This document shows positions 5,471 to 53,181 of a DNA stretch of 64,000 bases, in pieces (positions within the stretch are counted from its first letter, which is position 1; each line of letters opens with the position of its first letter). The translations under genes were made by a program, and so were the position numbers. Location: the sequence record NC_041973.1, one strand, 5' to 3'. The notes below the pieces were generated by a model, which was not told the DNA's origin, did not search any database, and saw nothing but the letters and a program-made list of their open reading frames with translations.

Positions 5471-5761
5471 ATGAAATGGTACGAACGACTGGTCGAGAGC
5501 ACGGTGCTGCGGTTTATGGCAACCTTCCTCTTAGCCTGCTTGTGGTCCCTGCTCCTTTTAAGCCAATGCTCGTTAGCGCTCGATCTCACCTTAAGCGTGA
5601 TCTCTCTGGTGATCGTGTATAACCTGCGGGATTTCTTAAAGGACTTGCACCACGGTGTTTCAACCCGTCATGACTTTGCAGGGTGGTTTGTGCTGAACGC
5701 TGCTGGCATGGCACTGCTCTCGGCAATCATTAACGCCCTGTTCATCTTACATAGACTCTAG
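5471..5761 (+). CDS. Small multi-pass membrane protein
   Basis: Three hydrophobic segments; abuts previous stop. Confidence 0.7.
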   Translation: MKWYERLVESTVLRFMATFLLACLWSLLLLSQCSLALDLTLSVISLVIVYNLRDFLKDLHHGVSTRHDFAGWFVLNAAGMALLSAIINALFILHRL

Positions 5762-5769
5762 GAGCTCTC

Positions 5770-6351
5770 ATGTCAAAGAAACTCGATACCCGTAAAAGTA
5801 TGTTCCTGGCCTTGGTGTTACGCCACCGTCCCGAAGAGATCGGAATTACCCTGGATGAGAACGGCTGGGCCAAAGTCAGCGAAGTGATCACCGGGTTTAC
5901 CTTTACCGGGCGTGGGCTCTCATTACCTGAGCTTGAGATCATCGTTGAGACGGATGAGAAGAAGCGTTACCAGCTCTCTGACGATAAGTGCTATATCCGG
6001 GCCGTGCAGGGGCATTCTCACGAGAGCGTGATGAACATGCAGCTGGAAGTGGCGACACCGCCAAAGTACTTGTATCACGGCACCCAACAGATCTCCTGTG
6101 AATCGATCGAGCGACAAGGGATCTTGCGCCTTAAACGTTTATATGTCCACCTAACGGATGACATCGAAGCGGCTTGGCGCGCAGCAACTCGTAAACGAAC
6201 AGCCGGTGCAGTCTACCGAATCGACACCGAGAAGATGACGCGGATGGGCCATGTGTTCTATCGCGCTGAGAACGGGGTCTGGCTGGCGAAGCGCATTCCT
6301 TTCTCAGTCATTGAGATGGTTGATGCACATGACGAAGAAACAAGTACCTGA
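5770..6351 (+). CDS. kptA: RNA 2'-phosphotransferase (KptA/Tpt1 family)
   Basis: LRHRPEEIGITLDENGW, RAVQGHS, LYHGT, VHLT and ENGVWL motifs. Confidence 0.92.
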   Translation: MSKKLDTRKSMFLALVLRHRPEEIGITLDENGWAKVSEVITGFTFTGRGLSLPELEIIVETDEKKRYQLSDDKCYIRAVQGHSHESVMNMQLEVATPPKYLYHGTQQISCESIERQGILRLKRLYVHLTDDIEAAWRAATRKRTAGAVYRIDTEKMTRMGHVFYRAENGVWLAKRIPFSVIEMVDAHDEETST

Positions 6352-6613
6352 GTGGTGGCACGTCCCCATGTTACCCATTGGGTTCATGATGATTTGGGTA
6401 GGATATGTAATAGGTGGGCAGTTCCTCAGTTTCTGGGGGTGTATCTGTGTCACGTTGATTTGTGGTGGGGTTTCGTACCAGCACTGCATGCGCTCAACCA
6501 AGTATCGCAAAAATTCCGTAAGCTGGTTTATCTGTTGGAATGCTTACGGTATCATCGCGTGTTTGGGTATTGGGTTTATGGTAGCGGCAATTTATCTAGG
6601 CGGAGTCAAATAA
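6329..6613 (+). CDS. Small membrane protein
   Basis: Three hydrophobic segments; start (6323 or 6329) overlaps kptA end. Confidence 0.65.
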   Translation: MTKKQVPEWWHVPMLPIGFMMIWVGYVIGGQFLSFWGCICVTLICGGVSYQHCMRSTKYRKNSVSWFICWNAYGIIACLGIGFMVAAIYLGGVK

Positions 6614-6886
6614 GTGAAAAGTAAAACAGGCAGTAAGTTAACACGCACGTTGTTGTTTTGTTTTGGTGCTTACATCACGGGGATGTTTGCCTTGATGATG
6701 ATCCTGTCATCACAAAGCACTGCAGGCATCACTGCAGGGAACTATGACAAAATGAGCGTGGATGACTCGCCTGAGTTTATTTTAACAGATCGCAGTAATG
6801 GATGTAGATACGTCTATGACTCGGTTACCAAAACAGCCCACACTGCAACAGGCTTCGATTACTGCCTGTCGCTAAGGAAAGAATAA
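6614..6886 (+). CDS. Small exported/membrane protein
   Basis: N-terminal hydrophobic helix; abuts previous stop. Confidence 0.6.
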   Translation: MKSKTGSKLTRTLLFCFGAYITGMFALMMILSSQSTAGITAGNYDKMSVDDSPEFILTDRSNGCRYVYDSVTKTAHTATGFDYCLSLRKE

Positions 6887-6958
6887 TGGTTCGTGCTTAT
6901 CGACACTCTGAGCTGCTACGATGGCCGCATCCCGCGGCCTGCACCCGGAGTTCGTTCT

Positions 6959-7186
6959 ATGTCTATTGCAGTCAACCGTCATCACGCTAAACGTTTAAAG
7001 GCCAAACGTAAACATTACTGGAACGTCGGCGGGAAACGCCAGAACAACAAGGCGGTGGGAATTATCTTCCATACCCCGTGCAAATGCAGCTGCACTATGT
7101 GCGGTAACCAACGCAAGCATTGGGGTCGCCCGATCCAGGAAGTGAAACAAGCGGCCCGTTTTAGTGATACGGTCACTGACATTTAA
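6959..7186 (+). CDS. Small basic Cys-motif protein
   Basis: GGAG RBS before ATG 6959; HTPCKCSCTMCGNQRK motif. Confidence 0.7.
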   Translation: MSIAVNRHHAKRLKAKRKHYWNVGGKRQNNKAVGIIFHTPCKCSCTMCGNQRKHWGRPIQEVKQAARFSDTVTDI

Positions 7187-49252: not shown

Positions 49253-50638
49253 ATGTTGTCATTCGGTGAATTTGTTGAGAAGTCACGCCCTATTCGACCT
49301 TTCTTGAATATCGGCGCGGGCTTTGATATCCCAACCGGTAGCTATCGTTTCGGTAAGCACGGTGAATCTATTCTTAATGGTGGTCTGGCGCCATTCATTG
49401 CGATCGTTGGTAAAGGCAACACCTTTAAAACAGCGATCGGTTGTTTCATGATGACCCGCGTGCTGGAGCGCTACAATAACTCTAACGGTCTCCACTACGA
49501 TACCGAGTGTACGTTCAGTGCCGATCGTCTTACCAGTCTTACCAGTCGTCTGGGTCCGAATGCTGCTGCAGAGTGGCTGGCCAACGAACGTATCTACCTG
49601 ACTGATGACTCCATCATTAAAGGTAACCAGTGGTTTAAGAAATCGGTGCAGGAATACTCCGAAGCGAAGAAGAAAGCCAAAATGGGCACGCTGCCGTTTG
49701 TGGATAAAGATGGGAACTTAATCCCGTATCCATACCCGACAGTCAACTTTGGCGATTCCATGTCTGAGATGAAATTCGACGATCTGGAAAAGAACTACGC
49801 CAAGATGGAAATCGGCCAGGGTGAAATGCAAACGGAAGCCATGCGTGTGTCGAATGCCAAACGCATGTTAATCGAAAAGACCCAGGGTTACGCCAACGCC
49901 GGCGGCATGTATGTCATCATGACAGCGCACTTAGGTAAAGAGCTGAACATGGACGGCAAACCACAAGAGAAGAAAACCACCTTTATGAAACAAGGTGACA
50001 AAATCTCTAAGGTGCCTTCACAGATCCTCTCTCTGCCAAACAACGCCTGGGAGATCTCTACCGGTACGGTGTTGATTGATAAGAACACCAAAGAGTGGAT
50101 GTACCCGAAACAGGGTCGTAATGACGTGGATACCAACGGTAACCCGGACATGATCACTCTGGTGGCGAAGAACCTGCGCGGGAAGAATGGTCCGTCTGGT
50201 GTGCCGTGGGAATTCGTGATGTCACAGTCTGAAGGTCTGCTGCCGTCTCTGACTGAGTTCCATTACATTAAGAACAACGGCCGTTACGGCCTGGGTGGCA
50301 ATGACCGTAATTATTATGTTGAATTGTGCCCAGATATCAAGCTGCAGCGCACCACCGTGCGTGATCGCATCGACGACAACCCTGAGTTACGTCGGGCATT
50401 AGAGATCACCATGGAGATGTGTCAGATGCGTTTCCTGTGGCACACCCGCGATCCAAAGTACAACATGACTCCTCAGGAACTGCGTGAAGGCCTGGAGAAG
50501 AAAGGGTACAAATGGGATCAGTTGCTCAACACCCGTGGGTTCTGGACGTTTGAAGAAGACAACCATCCATTACCATTCTTAAGCACAATGGATCTACTCC
50601 GCATGTATCATGATGAGTATCGCCCATACTGGCTGTAA
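49253..50638 (+). CDS. uvsX: UvsX/RecA-like recombinase
   Basis: GKGNTFKT P-loop, YDTE, DSMSE, MTAHLGK; phiKZ-type synteny with RNase H and RNAP subunit. Confidence 0.85.
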   Translation: MLSFGEFVEKSRPIRPFLNIGAGFDIPTGSYRFGKHGESILNGGLAPFIAIVGKGNTFKTAIGCFMMTRVLERYNNSNGLHYDTECTFSADRLTSLTSRLGPNAAAEWLANERIYLTDDSIIKGNQWFKKSVQEYSEAKKKAKMGTLPFVDKDGNLIPYPYPTVNFGDSMSEMKFDDLEKNYAKMEIGQGEMQTEAMRVSNAKRMLIEKTQGYANAGGMYVIMTAHLGKELNMDGKPQEKKTTFMKQGDKISKVPSQILSLPNNAWEISTGTVLIDKNTKEWMYPKQGRNDVDTNGNPDMITLVAKNLRGKNGPSGVPWEFVMSQSEGLLPSLTEFHYIKNNGRYGLGGNDRNYYVELCPDIKLQRTTVRDRIDDNPELRRALEITMEMCQMRFLWHTRDPKYNMTPQELREGLEKKGYKWDQLLNTRGFWTFEEDNHPLPFLSTMDLLRMYHDEYRPYWL

Positions 50639-50652
50639 GTGTACCCACTGTG

Positions 50653-50682
50653 GGAGAGGGTTATCCCTCTCCTTCTTATACC
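50653..50682 (+). terminator. Intrinsic terminator, TTATACC variant tail
   Basis: GGAGAGGG-TTAT-CCCTCTCC-TTCTTATACC. Confidence 0.8.
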
Positions 50683-50718
50683 GTCAGTAGAGGGAAATAA
50701 GCTAATAGGAAGCAGTAT

Positions 50719-51138
50719 ATGCTTAACAAAGAAATACGCATTGTCGTTGCGTCGACTAAAGGTTTCAACGACGCAGAGCGTTTAAAACTGACTATTGACG
50801 GCCTCCTGGAAGATATCTATTACCTCAACGAAGGGGTAGGTGATGAGGACGAGGAGTTGATCACTGATGCCAAGATCGTTTTCATCACTAATGGCGAACA
50901 CAAAACAGCGGCTGAGTTGCTGCCTGGCGTGTTGGGTGATCGGAACATCGACATCGAAGTGATCAAGGTTGATTGGTCAAAAGGTAAGAAAGCGTTTTTT
51001 GATAACTGCGCTGTATTGGGTGCGAAGTCGACCCACGGCGTCATTTTTACGGACAGCAAAGATGACGGGATGCAGACACTGCTGAAAGCATGTCTCGATG
51101 CCGGCTCACGCGTTCGTACTTATAGCTCTGCTATTTGA
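50719..51138 (+). CDS. Degenerate SLOG (YspA/DUF2493-like) protein
   Basis: RIVVASTKGFND, FITNG, IKVDWSKGKKA..N..L..THGVIF.D.KD.G pattern parallels the SLOG domain of 51629..52510. Confidence 0.6.
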   Translation: MLNKEIRIVVASTKGFNDAERLKLTIDGLLEDIYYLNEGVGDEDEELITDAKIVFITNGEHKTAAELLPGVLGDRNIDIEVIKVDWSKGKKAFFDNCAVLGAKSTHGVIFTDSKDDGMQTLLKACLDAGSRVRTYSSAI

Positions 51139-51152
51139 GAAAGGTAACCCCC

Positions 51153-51599
51153 ATGATAGCCTCAGAAGCTCACGTTAGTATACTTGACGTTAATGTCACC
51201 CACGTTATATGCACAGTTAATTGCGAAGGGCATATGGGTCGTGGCATAGCCTTGTATCTGCGTAAGTGTATTCCGGGGCTATATGAGCGGTATAAACACC
51301 TGTGCAGTTTAGGGATCATCACGGTAGACAAACTCTGGATCTACCCATCACACCCCCGTCAGATTCTCTGCTTTCCAACCAAAGATAAAACCTGGGAAGA
51401 CAGCAAGCTTGAATGGATCGAAGCCAATCTCATAAAGCTTCGTGACAACTACAAAACAAAAGGCATTGTCTCTGTGGCGATGCCTCCTCTTGGATGTGGA
51501 AACGGTAACCTAAAGTGGGATGAGGTGCGGAGCCTCATTTATGCCATCTTGGGTGATTGTGACCTTGAAGTCCACATCTGTTTAGGTAAACCGAAGTGA
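51153..51599 (+). CDS. Macrodomain protein (DarG/Appr-1''-p processing-like)
   Basis: TVNCEGHMGRGIA, FPTK..W, AMPPLGCGNGNLKW.EV. Confidence 0.9.
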   Translation: MIASEAHVSILDVNVTHVICTVNCEGHMGRGIALYLRKCIPGLYERYKHLCSLGIITVDKLWIYPSHPRQILCFPTKDKTWEDSKLEWIEANLIKLRDNYKTKGIVSVAMPPLGCGNGNLKWDEVRSLIYAILGDCDLEVHICLGKPK

Positions 51600-51628
51600 G
51601 GGAAACACCCTGAATAGGAGCCAGTATT

Positions 51629-52510
51629 ATGTCTGATAACGCACGCGTTTTACCCGATCCACGCGAAGATGGCAAGACGCACATCAACGTCTATAGCCGT
51701 GGCGCTTCCTGGTTAGGACAGCAACTTTCTAATATGTCCTACTACGACTTCGCACATCCACGCTACGGCGTGTTCGCCTCGTTGGAGGGCTTCTGGTATT
51801 GGTTGTCTACGGGCAAGCAACACGAGGAGTTACGGAAGCTTGCCGGGGTCAAAGCGAAAATGACCGGCCGGGAGTTCGAGACGATCCCAAATGAAAACTT
51901 TGAAGAAGAGTTCAAAGAAGCCATGCGTTTGCGTCTGGAGCAACACCCGATCATCGCCAATGCCCTGGCTGAATCGTTACTGCCGTTAAAGCACTACTAT
52001 TGTTACGGTGGGAAAGTGATCGACTTGTATGACCGCCACAAATGGCAAATGGACTTCTACGAGGAGTGGCGTAAAGCCAATGCCCCCGAAGACACCACCT
52101 TGGTATTGTTGATCTCTGGCTCACGTAAAGAGAAAGACTACGACGCCTTTAAGCACATCGTGATGACCTACCTGCAACCGTATATCGACAAGATAAAGGA
52201 CACGTACAAAATCACCCTGCTTTCGGGGCTCGCCTGGGAAGGTCCCGATGACATGGCAATTCGTCTGTGTCGGGAAGAAGGCTTCATGTTGATTGGTCTG
52301 CCGGCTAAGTGGAAAGAGCAAGGCAAAGCCGCGGGCATGATCCGCAATGGTGCCATGGGGCGGTTGTGTAACAAGGCTTTGGTGTTCTGGGATGGCGAGT
52401 CACCGGGGACAAAAGGGATGATTGATTACCTGAAGAAAAATACTATAGACCATCTTGTGTATTTACACGGTAAACATGAACCTGACTGGAAAGCCCCGGA
52501 GACATCATGA
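51629..52510 (+). CDS. NADAR-like domain fused to SLOG (YspA-like) domain
   Basis: N: HINVYSRG..LSN..F.SLEGFWY..AK..G..LRLEQHP; C: ISGSR, SGLAWEGPD.MA, W..GKAAG.IRN..M, ALVFWDGESPGTK.MI. Confidence 0.75.
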   Translation: MSDNARVLPDPREDGKTHINVYSRGASWLGQQLSNMSYYDFAHPRYGVFASLEGFWYWLSTGKQHEELRKLAGVKAKMTGREFETIPNENFEEEFKEAMRLRLEQHPIIANALAESLLPLKHYYCYGGKVIDLYDRHKWQMDFYEEWRKANAPEDTTLVLLISGSRKEKDYDAFKHIVMTYLQPYIDKIKDTYKITLLSGLAWEGPDDMAIRLCREEGFMLIGLPAKWKEQGKAAGMIRNGAMGRLCNKALVFWDGESPGTKGMIDYLKKNTIDHLVYLHGKHEPDWKAPETS

Positions 52511-53181
52511 CCCCAGCACGCGAACAGACCCAGCAATTTGTGATCGAGGCTATTGCTGAGATTCTCCCCGGTTCTAAGAACCGGGATATCTATATCGACT
52601 TCTTCTCGCGGTTGAGCGATGAGGCGTTTGATGCCCTGATGCAGCGGATGGATGAAGACCAGGAGATCTTCCCCTTCTACCATCCGAACTTTACCGGCAC
52701 GGTAATTGATGTTGAACGTGTGATCAAGTTAATTGAAAAGCACGGCGACACCATCATGGAGCAGCTCTGGGATATCGACCCGGAAACCGGACTGCAGTAC
52801 CTGACTCCATTGAAGTATCCGGTGCTGTTACTTCCGCTGCGTATTCAGCAGCAGAAGCTGCAGAAGAAGATGTCGATTCCAAAAGACAACAACCACATCG
52901 ACGATCTGACTAACCAGCCCACCACCGAATCCAAAGGGGCTTCTTTGTCTTACCCGGAAGTGCAGATCATCTATGCCATGGGTGGTGACAAGATTCTGGA
53001 AGAGACCATGAAGGTCCGTGGTGGTGATGAGAAGGCGTTTCGTGATTACAATAACGAAATCATTGCAAGCGGCGGTGTCACCATTGGTGCAATCAGCAGC
53101 AGCAAGACCAAGGTGAAGTCCACCAAAACCGTGCAAGTGATTCTTGAGGCCATGCACCTGAGCAACAACCTGGCCAGTTAA
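52507..53181 (+). CDS. Virion RNA polymerase beta subunit, C-terminal fragment (phiKZ gp149-like)
   Basis: LTNQPT.ESKG..S.PE..A.G..LEE.MKVRGGD aligns with RpoB C-terminal TQQP..GEME..L.E..KSDD; synteny with uvsX. Confidence 0.8.
   Translation: MTPAREQTQQFVIEAIAEILPGSKNRDIYIDFFSRLSDEAFDALMQRMDEDQEIFPFYHPNFTGTVIDVERVIKLIEKHGDTIMEQLWDIDPETGLQYLTPLKYPVLLLPLRIQQQKLQKKMSIPKDNNHIDDLTNQPTTESKGASLSYPEVQIIYAMGGDKILEETMKVRGGDEKAFRDYNNEIIASGGVTIGAISSSKTKVKSTKTVQVILEAMHLSNNLAS

Follow-up and report, generated by a model that had tools for sequence, protein, structure and literature searches.

Three small genes lie between the gene for a UvsX-like recombinase and that for a fragment of the virion RNA polymerase (vRNAP) beta subunit in the 64,000-nucleotide (nt) stretch of sequence record NC_041973.1 analysed here (the window). 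What do these genes do for the phage that carries them? At 100% identity, the region matches Erwinia phage vB_EamM_RAY (RAY; KU886224.1, window position = record position minus 62000), an Agricanvirus and nucleus-forming chimallivirus, in whose record the three products are labelled hypothetical (gp151), 'putative phosphatase' (gp152) and 'putative DprA-like protein' (gp153). A sequence-only reading of this DNA had proposed a counter-ADP-ribosylation module that pairs a DarG-type macrodomain, directed against thymidine-linked ADP-ribose (ADPr), with a NADAR domain directed against guanine-linked ADPr. Domain identities, linkage and fusion support this idea. We consider it probable, at roughly 0.6, that the cassette is a vertically inherited counter-defence or repair module, which removes host DarT-type ADP-ribose off the phage's single-stranded DNA (ssDNA) inside the phage nucleus.

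The cassette comprises three open reading frames (ORFs) on the same strand, with these features in window positions:

50719..51138, plus strand: gp151, stand-alone divergent YAcAr-type SLOG, 139 residues
51153..51599, plus strand: gp152, DarG2/TARG1-type macrodomain, 148 residues from the annotated ATG (154 residues if the ORF is opened at TTG 51135)
51629..52510, plus strand: gp153, whole gene, NADAR-SLOG fusion, 293 residues
51641..52099, plus strand: gp153 residues 5-157, divergent NADAR domain
52100..52474, plus strand: gp153 residues 158-282, YAcAr/DprA-like SLOG domain

Macrodomain of gp152 and NADAR domain of gp153

The product of the second gene, gp152, was matched by Pfam Macro (E=1.2e-9), NCBIfam DarG (E=1.4e-37, 129.7 bits against a cut-off of 250 bits) and PADLOC DarG (E=1e-40). 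Among solved structures, the closest to it in sequence are 5m3i, 5m31 and 7omu, all DarG macrodomains (M. tuberculosis, T. aquaticus), and TARG1 comes next. Thus the call of a DarG-type macrodomain was correct. Since the NCBIfam match spans only positions 8-145 of the 338 in the DarG profile, gp152 lacks the DarT-binding domain.

DarG2-like macrodomains of other chimalliviruses were recently described as AdfM (anti-DarT factor macro), namely PhiKZ gp104, PhiPA3 gp108, Goslar gp83 and Asesino gp217 (PMC13309987, 2026). AdfM strips ssDNA of the ADP-ribose made by DarT2 and rescues DarT2 toxicity; it is found in the phage nucleus, and plating on DarTG2 hosts requires it. Removal of the thymidine mark, DarTG2 protection and nuclear import were shown only for the proteins of PhiKZ, PhiPA3 and Asesino; the catalytic pair is N22/K80 when numbered as in T. 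aquaticus and N23/K78 when numbered as in PhiKZ (PMC13309987). In our alignment, Asn23 (in TVN) and Lys77 (in FPTK) of gp152 coincide with these catalytic residues and are, together with the PPLGCGNG loop, conserved with the PhiKZ-like and PhiPA3 AdfM proteins, while overall identity to PhiPA3 gp108 and PhiKZ-type proteins amounts to ~34-35%. Like AdfM, gp152 is a stand-alone DarG2-like macrodomain of similar size from a nucleus-forming jumbo phage, and by its sequence we file it as an AdfM-type, DarG2-like orphan macrodomain protein. However, the macrodomains of bacterial DarG resemble gp152 just as closely (83.6 bits to 5m3i) as PhiKZ-type AdfM does. The genomic context differs as well: gp152 is always linked or fused to NADAR-SLOG and the SLOG paralogue, whereas the macro gene of PhiPA3, of a PhiKZ-like phage and of Huxley has no SLOG or NADAR neighbour within 4 kb.

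For the N-terminal half of gp153, no match came from scanning it directly with Pfam, NCBIfam and PADLOC or from searching the PDB by sequence, and a 20-sequence profile of the domain yielded only sub-significant NADAR matches amid collagen noise. Employing hhalign, the profile of its family aligned to single sequences of YbiA (92.3%, E=5.5e-7) and T4 gp30.3 (86%), and profile-profile comparison with a 52-member AdfN/Phage_30_3 alignment gave 97.3% (E=1.7e-11, 138 columns). The AlphaFold2 model of the domain reached a mean predicted local distance difference test score (pLDDT) of 95.5 and a predicted template modelling score of 0.89. Searched with Foldseek against the PDB, it retrieved the three NADAR entries as its top three matches, followed by noise: YbiA 2b3w (E=3e-4, TM 0.61), P. 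nicotianae NADAR (PnNADAR) with ADP-ribose 8bau (E=2.7e-3) and G. lovleyi DarG1 8bat. Dozens of its BFVD matches are named NADAR as well.

The active site points in the same direction. E53 of gp153, kept in 59 of 60 family members, aligns with the catalytic E36 of AdfN and E48 of YbiA (equivalents elsewhere are E43 of PnNADAR and E88 of E. coli C7). According to the literature, the second catalytic position in the last strand is Glu in YbiA, Asp in BC4488 and His in phage gp30.3. In gp153, the aligned residue is H122 (again 59/60), whose counterpart H123 is invariant in the AdfN family; in the model it lies next to strand 123-126. K77 and R148 are conserved. The domain thus shares with AdfN (T4 gp30.3 and other phage NADARs; PMC11825919, PMC11125620) the NADAR fold, the catalytic Glu, a G..AK..G motif, the last-strand His and a C-terminal Arg. 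We conclude that it is a NADAR domain of the phage gp30.3/AdfN-like 'His' type, whose fold and family are secure, its substrate not. It differs from AdfN in an identity of ~20%, in the fused SLOG domain and in family-specific invariant residues (H18, N20, W56 and Y123). AdfN-type NADARs strip guanine-ADPr from DNA and defeat DarTG1 (PMC11825919); this hydrolysis on DNA and rescue from DarT1 were shown for AdfN of T4, Bas32 and Bas60.

The family to which this domain belongs is large, with 2,065 clusters (50% identity) at E<=1e-3 and 681 at E<=1e-30, and is detected by no Pfam, NCBIfam or PADLOC model. By tblastn, full-length gp153 matched 921 phage records, some through its NADAR-like half (Ackermannviridae, GAP32-like giants, Vibrio phages) and others through its SLOG half. 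The matching genes mostly bear the label 'hypothetical' and in a few cases 'virion structural protein'.

SLOG domains of gp153 and gp151

That the C-terminal ~125 residues of gp153 form a SLOG domain is supported by PF10686 (YAcAr), which is precomputed on gp153 homologues and was found in 34 of 96 family members at E<=0.001 in our own scan, and by phrog_289 (E=1e-20). DprA PF02481 was matched by 13 of the 96 family members, gp153 itself not being among them, and the best PDB match of the SLOG profile is DprA 3uqz (E=0.032). The ssDNA signature of DprA consists of two motifs, G-S/T/A-R and F/L/Y-x-x-R-N/D (variant A-M-x-R-N/D), which form a pocket accepting one flipped base in the H. pylori DprA-ssDNA structure (PMC3950713). 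Both are present in gp153, as SGSR and as GMIRN, the latter matching the variant. All pocket motifs are in place (GSR after strand 1, SGxAxGxD, xMxRN, DGxSxGT), and instead of the LOG motif PGGxGTxxE the domain has those of the DprA type. However, at ~125 residues it is shorter than the corresponding ~205 residues of DprA/Smf, is of the YAcAr type and lacks SAM and winged-helix domains.

The product of the first gene, gp151, was matched by phrog_289 (E=1.6e-6) and aligned with the SLOG domain of gp153 (hhalign 96.7%, E=4e-10). PF10686 is recorded on two of its homologues, and Iyer et al. (2021; PMC7824862) cite its orthologue from Rebecca, QBP07259.1, to exemplify the YAcAr SLOGs of jumbo phages. 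The sequence of gp151 itself went unmatched when scanned directly against Pfam, NCBIfam and PADLOC and when searched in the PDB. Its fold search returned >1,000 generic Rossmannoid matches, none at E<=1e-3, and by fold search alone the SLOG fold is not confirmed. Neither DprA motif is present: GSR is replaced by STK, SGxAxGxD by NGExKT and [AG]MxRN by FFDN. Hence gp151 is a paralogue of the gp153 SLOG domain which has lost the canonical nucleotide/ssDNA-pocket motifs, and the intact and altered SLOG pair that had been read from the sequence is real. The replacement residues are invariant within the gp151 family and dN/dS (the ratio of nonsynonymous to synonymous substitution rates) is 0.08-0.21, in keeping with purifying selection; consequently, the 'degenerate' member is altered, not decaying.

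Linkage, fusion and selection

All 11 related loci examined have retained the order gp149 - UvsX - gp151 - gp152 - gp153 - vRNAP beta - gp155; across them, identity falls from 97% to 75% for UvsX and from 88% to 45% for gp153. Because the genes occupy the same slot throughout, down to 75% UvsX identity, they were not recently 'inserted', as had been supposed; a recent insertion or mobile cassette is rejected, and the cassette is vertically inherited in the RAY clade. The sequence-only reading had said beforehand that genes unlinked in relatives would speak against a module, and the linkage is kept in 11 of 11 loci. In six of them (pEa_SNUABM_37 and five metagenomic contigs), Macro and NADAR-SLOG are even a single polypeptide of ~425 residues at the same position, which is classic fusion evidence for a shared function. 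Furthermore, the gp151-type SLOG was found only beside Macro/NADAR-SLOG genes (9/9 loci), and a whole-window search with our own hidden Markov models of the DarG-type Macro, NADAR-like and SLOG domains matched only the cassette.

All three cassette genes are under purifying selection, with dN/dS of 0.055-0.10 in comparison with Erwinia phage AH06. Their dN is 0.07-0.10 versus 0.02-0.04 for UvsX and vRNAP beta, thus ~2-5x faster, all dN/dS being <=0.10.

Probable function of the cassette

How might these proteins act together? Host DNA ADP-ribosyltransferases (DarT-type toxins) would mark single-stranded phage DNA, and the cassette would strip these marks within the phage nucleus. As judged from homology and intact catalytic residues, gp152 would serve as an AdfM-type orphan antitoxin that hydrolyses ADP-ribose from thymidine. 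The NADAR domain of gp153 would be a divergent N-glycosidase that frees guanine, or a different base, of ADP-ribose. The pocket of its SLOG domain (GSR, GMIRN) would accommodate ssDNA, or else a nucleotide that is flipped or modified, and would thereby deliver the enzyme to its substrate. For gp151, one may envision a partner or regulator that does not bind DNA and that perhaps pairs with the SLOG of gp153.

Localisation data are of particular weight here. A fusion of gp153 to green fluorescent protein co-localises with phage DNA in the RAY nucleus, like UvsX (Prichard et al. 2023, PMC10299810). Both gp153 and AdfM are nuclear, AdfM and phage NADARs act on DNA, DarT modifies ssDNA, and gp153 carries DprA-type motifs; de-ADP-ribosylation of ssDNA by nucleus-resident proteins is thus the best supported function. 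In addition, DarTG is present in some E. amylovora genomes.

Several points weigh against this interpretation. DarTG is apparently rare in E. amylovora, and AdfM in the phages where it was studied works alone, without a SLOG or NADAR neighbour. The match of gp153 to PF10686 (E=1.3e-4, 22.1 bits) lies below the cut-off of 28.2 bits, and binding of ssDNA has never been demonstrated for any YAcAr SLOG. With gp153 alone, neither PF08719 (NADAR) nor PF08010 (Phage_30_3) gives a match, while members of its family match both weakly. The phosphate-binding Lys seven residues after the catalytic Glu (K50 in PnNADAR, K95 in E. coli C7, K43 in AdfN) is not conserved: the aligned position S60 is Ser in 43%, Ala in 27% and Lys in 12% of the family, and basic residues occur only loosely at positions 63 (55%) and 64, three to four residues past the lost Lys. 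Consequently, guanine-ADPr activity cannot simply be assumed for gp153, whose substrate or chemistry may differ from guanine-ADPr hydrolysis. Of the proposed NADAR reversing guanine ADP-ribosylation, family and fold therefore stand and the guanine specificity is in doubt. The model of gp151 is Rossmannoid, with a pLDDT of only 67, and the role suggested for this protein is guesswork. In addition, the activities of all RAY proteins are predictions derived from sequence, what was observed here being domain identities, catalytic residues, linkage and fusion, and purifying selection. Finally, the Aravind group predicted soluble ADPr derivatives as the targets of SLOG, Macro and NADAR proteins in viruses (PMC9503650).

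This last prediction leads to the alternative that survives best, although we regard it as improbable: the cassette might scavenge soluble NAD-derived signals or toxins, such as the cyclic ADP-ribose (cADPR) isomers of Thoeris/TIR, ADPr-1''-phosphate or the cyclic phosphate ADPr>p, with the SLOGs serving either for sensing or as adenine-ribose N-glycosidases. Fusions of the NADAR-like family with DUF4326, for which a ribose-phosphate phosphatase activity is predicted, are frequent. SLOG domains in Thoeris bind cADPR-type ligands, which would suit such a role. Moreover, the published computational prediction concerns these very phage domain combinations (PMC9503650, PMC7824862). However, immune signals and their effectors are cytoplasmic, whereas gp153 resides in the nucleus with the DNA, and AdfM is nuclear elsewhere (PMC13309987). 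The macrodomain of gp152 is specifically of the DarG type and AdfM was shown to act on DNA, as do all phage NADARs tested to date, while the motifs of the gp153 SLOG are those of DprA for ssDNA and not those of LOG. Sensing or clearing of NAD-derived signals (Thoeris/SIR2-type), which the sequence-only reading had included, is thereby weakened. Degradation of soluble signals is disfavoured by the localisation data, and the nuclear location of gp153 favours DNA repair over the clearing of Thoeris-type signals.

Less likely again is an accessory role in recombination, in which gp153, and perhaps gp151, would be DprA-like mediators that bind ssDNA and load UvsX, the Macro and NADAR domains being secondary or unrelated. 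The adjacency to UvsX in 11 of 11 loci and the DprA motifs of the gp153 SLOG fit this idea. The annotation of gp153 as 'DprA-like', its grouping with recombination proteins (PMC10299810) and the proposal of jumbo-phage DprA/Smf as extra ssDNA-binding proteins (PMC7824862) fit as well. However, this SLOG is short and of the YAcAr type, is always fused to NADAR and in six relatives also to Macro, and the near-invariant Glu and His of the NADAR domain indicate that enzymatic activity is selected. Besides, gp153 is an accessory protein outside the chimallivirus core genome (PMC10299810), and a recombination role is compatible with de-ADP-ribosylation of ssDNA rather than exclusive of it.

An RNA-repair pathway, described for jumbo phages (PMC7824862), in which KptA removes tRNA 2'-phosphates to yield ADP-ribose 1''-2'' cyclic phosphate and the macrodomain with its partners clears this by-product, is the least probable: the window does contain KptA, as had been noted (gp82, a KptA/Tpt1 RNA 2'-phosphotransferase at 5770-6351; PF01885, E=5e-39), and gp152 bears the labels 'putative phosphatase' (GenBank) and 'phosphatase' (phrog_335), but KptA lies ~45 kb away and is unlinked to the cassette, gp152 matches DarG/TARG1-type and not Appr-1''-p phosphatase-type macrodomains, and gp153 is nuclear whereas the RAY homologue of RtcB, a putative RNA-repair ligase, is listed as cytoplasmic (PMC10299810). 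The 'second macro-like gene' that had been mentioned along with KptA was not found, as a Pfam scan of the 67 other annotated window proteins revealed no second Macro domain.

Within the de-ADP-ribosylation reading, one might speculate about a nucleus-resident multi-subunit machine acting on DNA, in which the gp153 SLOG would read ssDNA or the ADP-ribosylated nucleotide, gp151 would be a regulatory or scaffold subunit and the NADAR clade would have a base specificity other than guanine, directed for instance at ADP-ribose on cytidine or adenine or at some other bulky adduct of DNA. The basis for the other specificity would be the clade of >2,000 clusters that has lost the Lys and gained new invariant His and Asn residues. 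We regard this combined proposal as a doubtful one. If true, non-guanine specificity would point to a host DNA-modifying defence that is still unknown.

Comparison with known systems and significance

The cassette uses both hydrolase superfamilies of the DarTG systems, NADAR as in DarG1 and macrodomain as in DarG2, which reverse ADP-ribosylation of ssDNA on guanine by DarT1 and on thymidine by DarT2, respectively. In contrast to DarTG1 and DarTG2, it has neither a DarT toxin gene nor a DarT-binding domain and consists of orphan antitoxin-like genes in a phage. As no toxin gene occurs in the conserved slot, where the neighbours are UvsX and vRNAP beta, a true DarTG system is rejected.

The domain combination itself is already known. 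Neighbourhoods and fusions of Macro, NADAR, SLOG and DUF4326 for 'ADPr processing' in phages were described computationally by Iyer, Burroughs, Aravind and colleagues in 2021-22 (PMC7824862, PMC9503650), the orthologue of gp151 being their YAcAr example, and each enzyme class has been validated in other phages. While these papers predict soluble ADPr derivatives as substrates, localisation, the DprA motifs and the work on AdfM and AdfN point to ADP-ribosylated DNA here. New are the putative assignment of gp152 to AdfM and the finding that the unannotated half of the 'DprA-like' gp153 is a NADAR domain of a huge, Pfam-invisible clade with a modified active site. Also new is that the fused SLOG carries the ssDNA motifs of DprA and that gp151 has lost them, as are the conserved operon and the fusion within one chimallivirus clade. 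The database labels of gp152 ('putative phosphatase') and gp153 ('DprA-like protein') are corrected by these results.

That phages use orphan antitoxin-like hydrolases as a class of counter-defence has been recognised only lately (AdfN 2025, AdfM 2026). The RAY clade offers a natural example of both hydrolase types being retained together, in one operon or, in some relatives, one polypeptide, joined to DprA-like SLOGs and with one component in the nucleus. This makes several questions testable: whether nucleus-forming phages need several DNA-repair-type counter-defences, whether viral YAcAr SLOGs serve ssDNA targeting or small-molecule sensing, and which substrate is used by the very large unannotated NADAR clade of Ackermannviridae, GAP32-like giants and Vibrio phages.

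Borders of the cassette

The following features adjoin the cassette:

49253..50638, plus strand: gp150, UvsX-like recombinase (phrog_97, E=1.8e-56; synteny), conserved upstream neighbour and nuclear protein
50653..50672, plus strand: G+C-rich hairpin GGAGAGGG-TTAT-CCCTCTCC after the UvsX stop, followed by TTCTT
52507..53181, plus strand: gp154, virion RNA polymerase beta subunit fragment (phrog_3233, E=1.7e-99; synteny), conserved downstream neighbour

The coordinates agree with three tightly packed genes between uvsX and the vRNAP subunit that overlap the start of the latter. The gap is 14 nt between gp151 and gp152, taking the annotated ATG 51153 as start, and 29 nt between gp152 and gp153, while the stop of gp153 and the start of gp154 overlap as ATGA. 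Ribosome-binding sites are AGGAAG for gp151 and a strong AGGAG for gp153. For gp152, GAAAGG lies 9 nt upstream of ATG 51153, whereas the mechanical ORF opens at TTG 51135 and overlaps the gp151 stop; ATG 51153 is most plausibly the start, owing to its better ribosome-binding site.

The hairpin after UvsX (8-9 bp, -22.5 kcal/mol, z = -2.1 by fold computation) has equivalents with different stem sequences in four relatives (our loci L002, which is AH06, L010, L003 and L013). Its structure is conserved through covariation, with compensatory stem changes across the five phages. A tract of U follows only in closer relatives. Thus the hairpin taken for the uvsX terminator is present and conserved, and termination itself is plausible; it may be terminator-like or serve RNA stability, and it marks the cassette's 5' border. 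In close relatives, a conserved 20-nt stretch, TATACCGTCAGTAGAGGGAA, follows the hairpin. As it occurs only once in the window, a repeated promoter motif was ruled out. At this site (50639-50700), transcripts of the phage polymerases could have a boundary or a signal for processing. A sigma-70 promoter scan found no more sites than chance would give (6, with 6.7 expected).

Variants in related loci and other viruses

In AH06 (L002), extra ORFs of 115 and 94 residues occur inside the cassette, at 5581-5928 between macro and NADAR-SLOG and at 6813-7097 between NADAR-SLOG and vRNAP beta. The same gaps occur in L010 and L012. No Pfam family matched these small ORFs, the second of which is annotated 'RNA binding protein' in AH06. 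In the metagenomic locus L011 (6001-6868), the gp153 homologue is split into the overlapping frames 6001-6735 and 6731-6868, by a frameshift or a sequencing error.

Beyond the RAY clade, the NADAR-like domain is mostly stand-alone and often tandemly duplicated. Its fusion partners are DUF4326 (often), SLOG, DUF488-N3a and Macro, and in single cases a pyrimidine-dimer DNA glycosylase, BRCT and an I-TevI DNA-binding module. Tandem duplicates, as two adjacent or overlapping ORFs that each match the profile, were seen in many unrelated viral contigs (L020, L027, L033, L037, L062-L065, L070, L072, L073, L081 and L082), sometimes with a SLOG or DarG-type macro gene 4-5 kb off. One metagenomic protein of 683 residues (P0039) combines Macro, an I-TevI-type DNA-binding module, NADAR-like and SLOG domains; together with the glycosylase-fused family member it gives a hint toward DNA substrates. 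Escherichia phage SU10, a Kuravirus podovirus, carries in this order a DarG-type macro gene (43% identical to gp152), a sigma-70-region-2-like gene and a canonical SLOG labelled 'GTP-binding protein', without NADAR (L005, 3995-5491), and Macro-SLOG linkage thus recurs outside jumbo phages.

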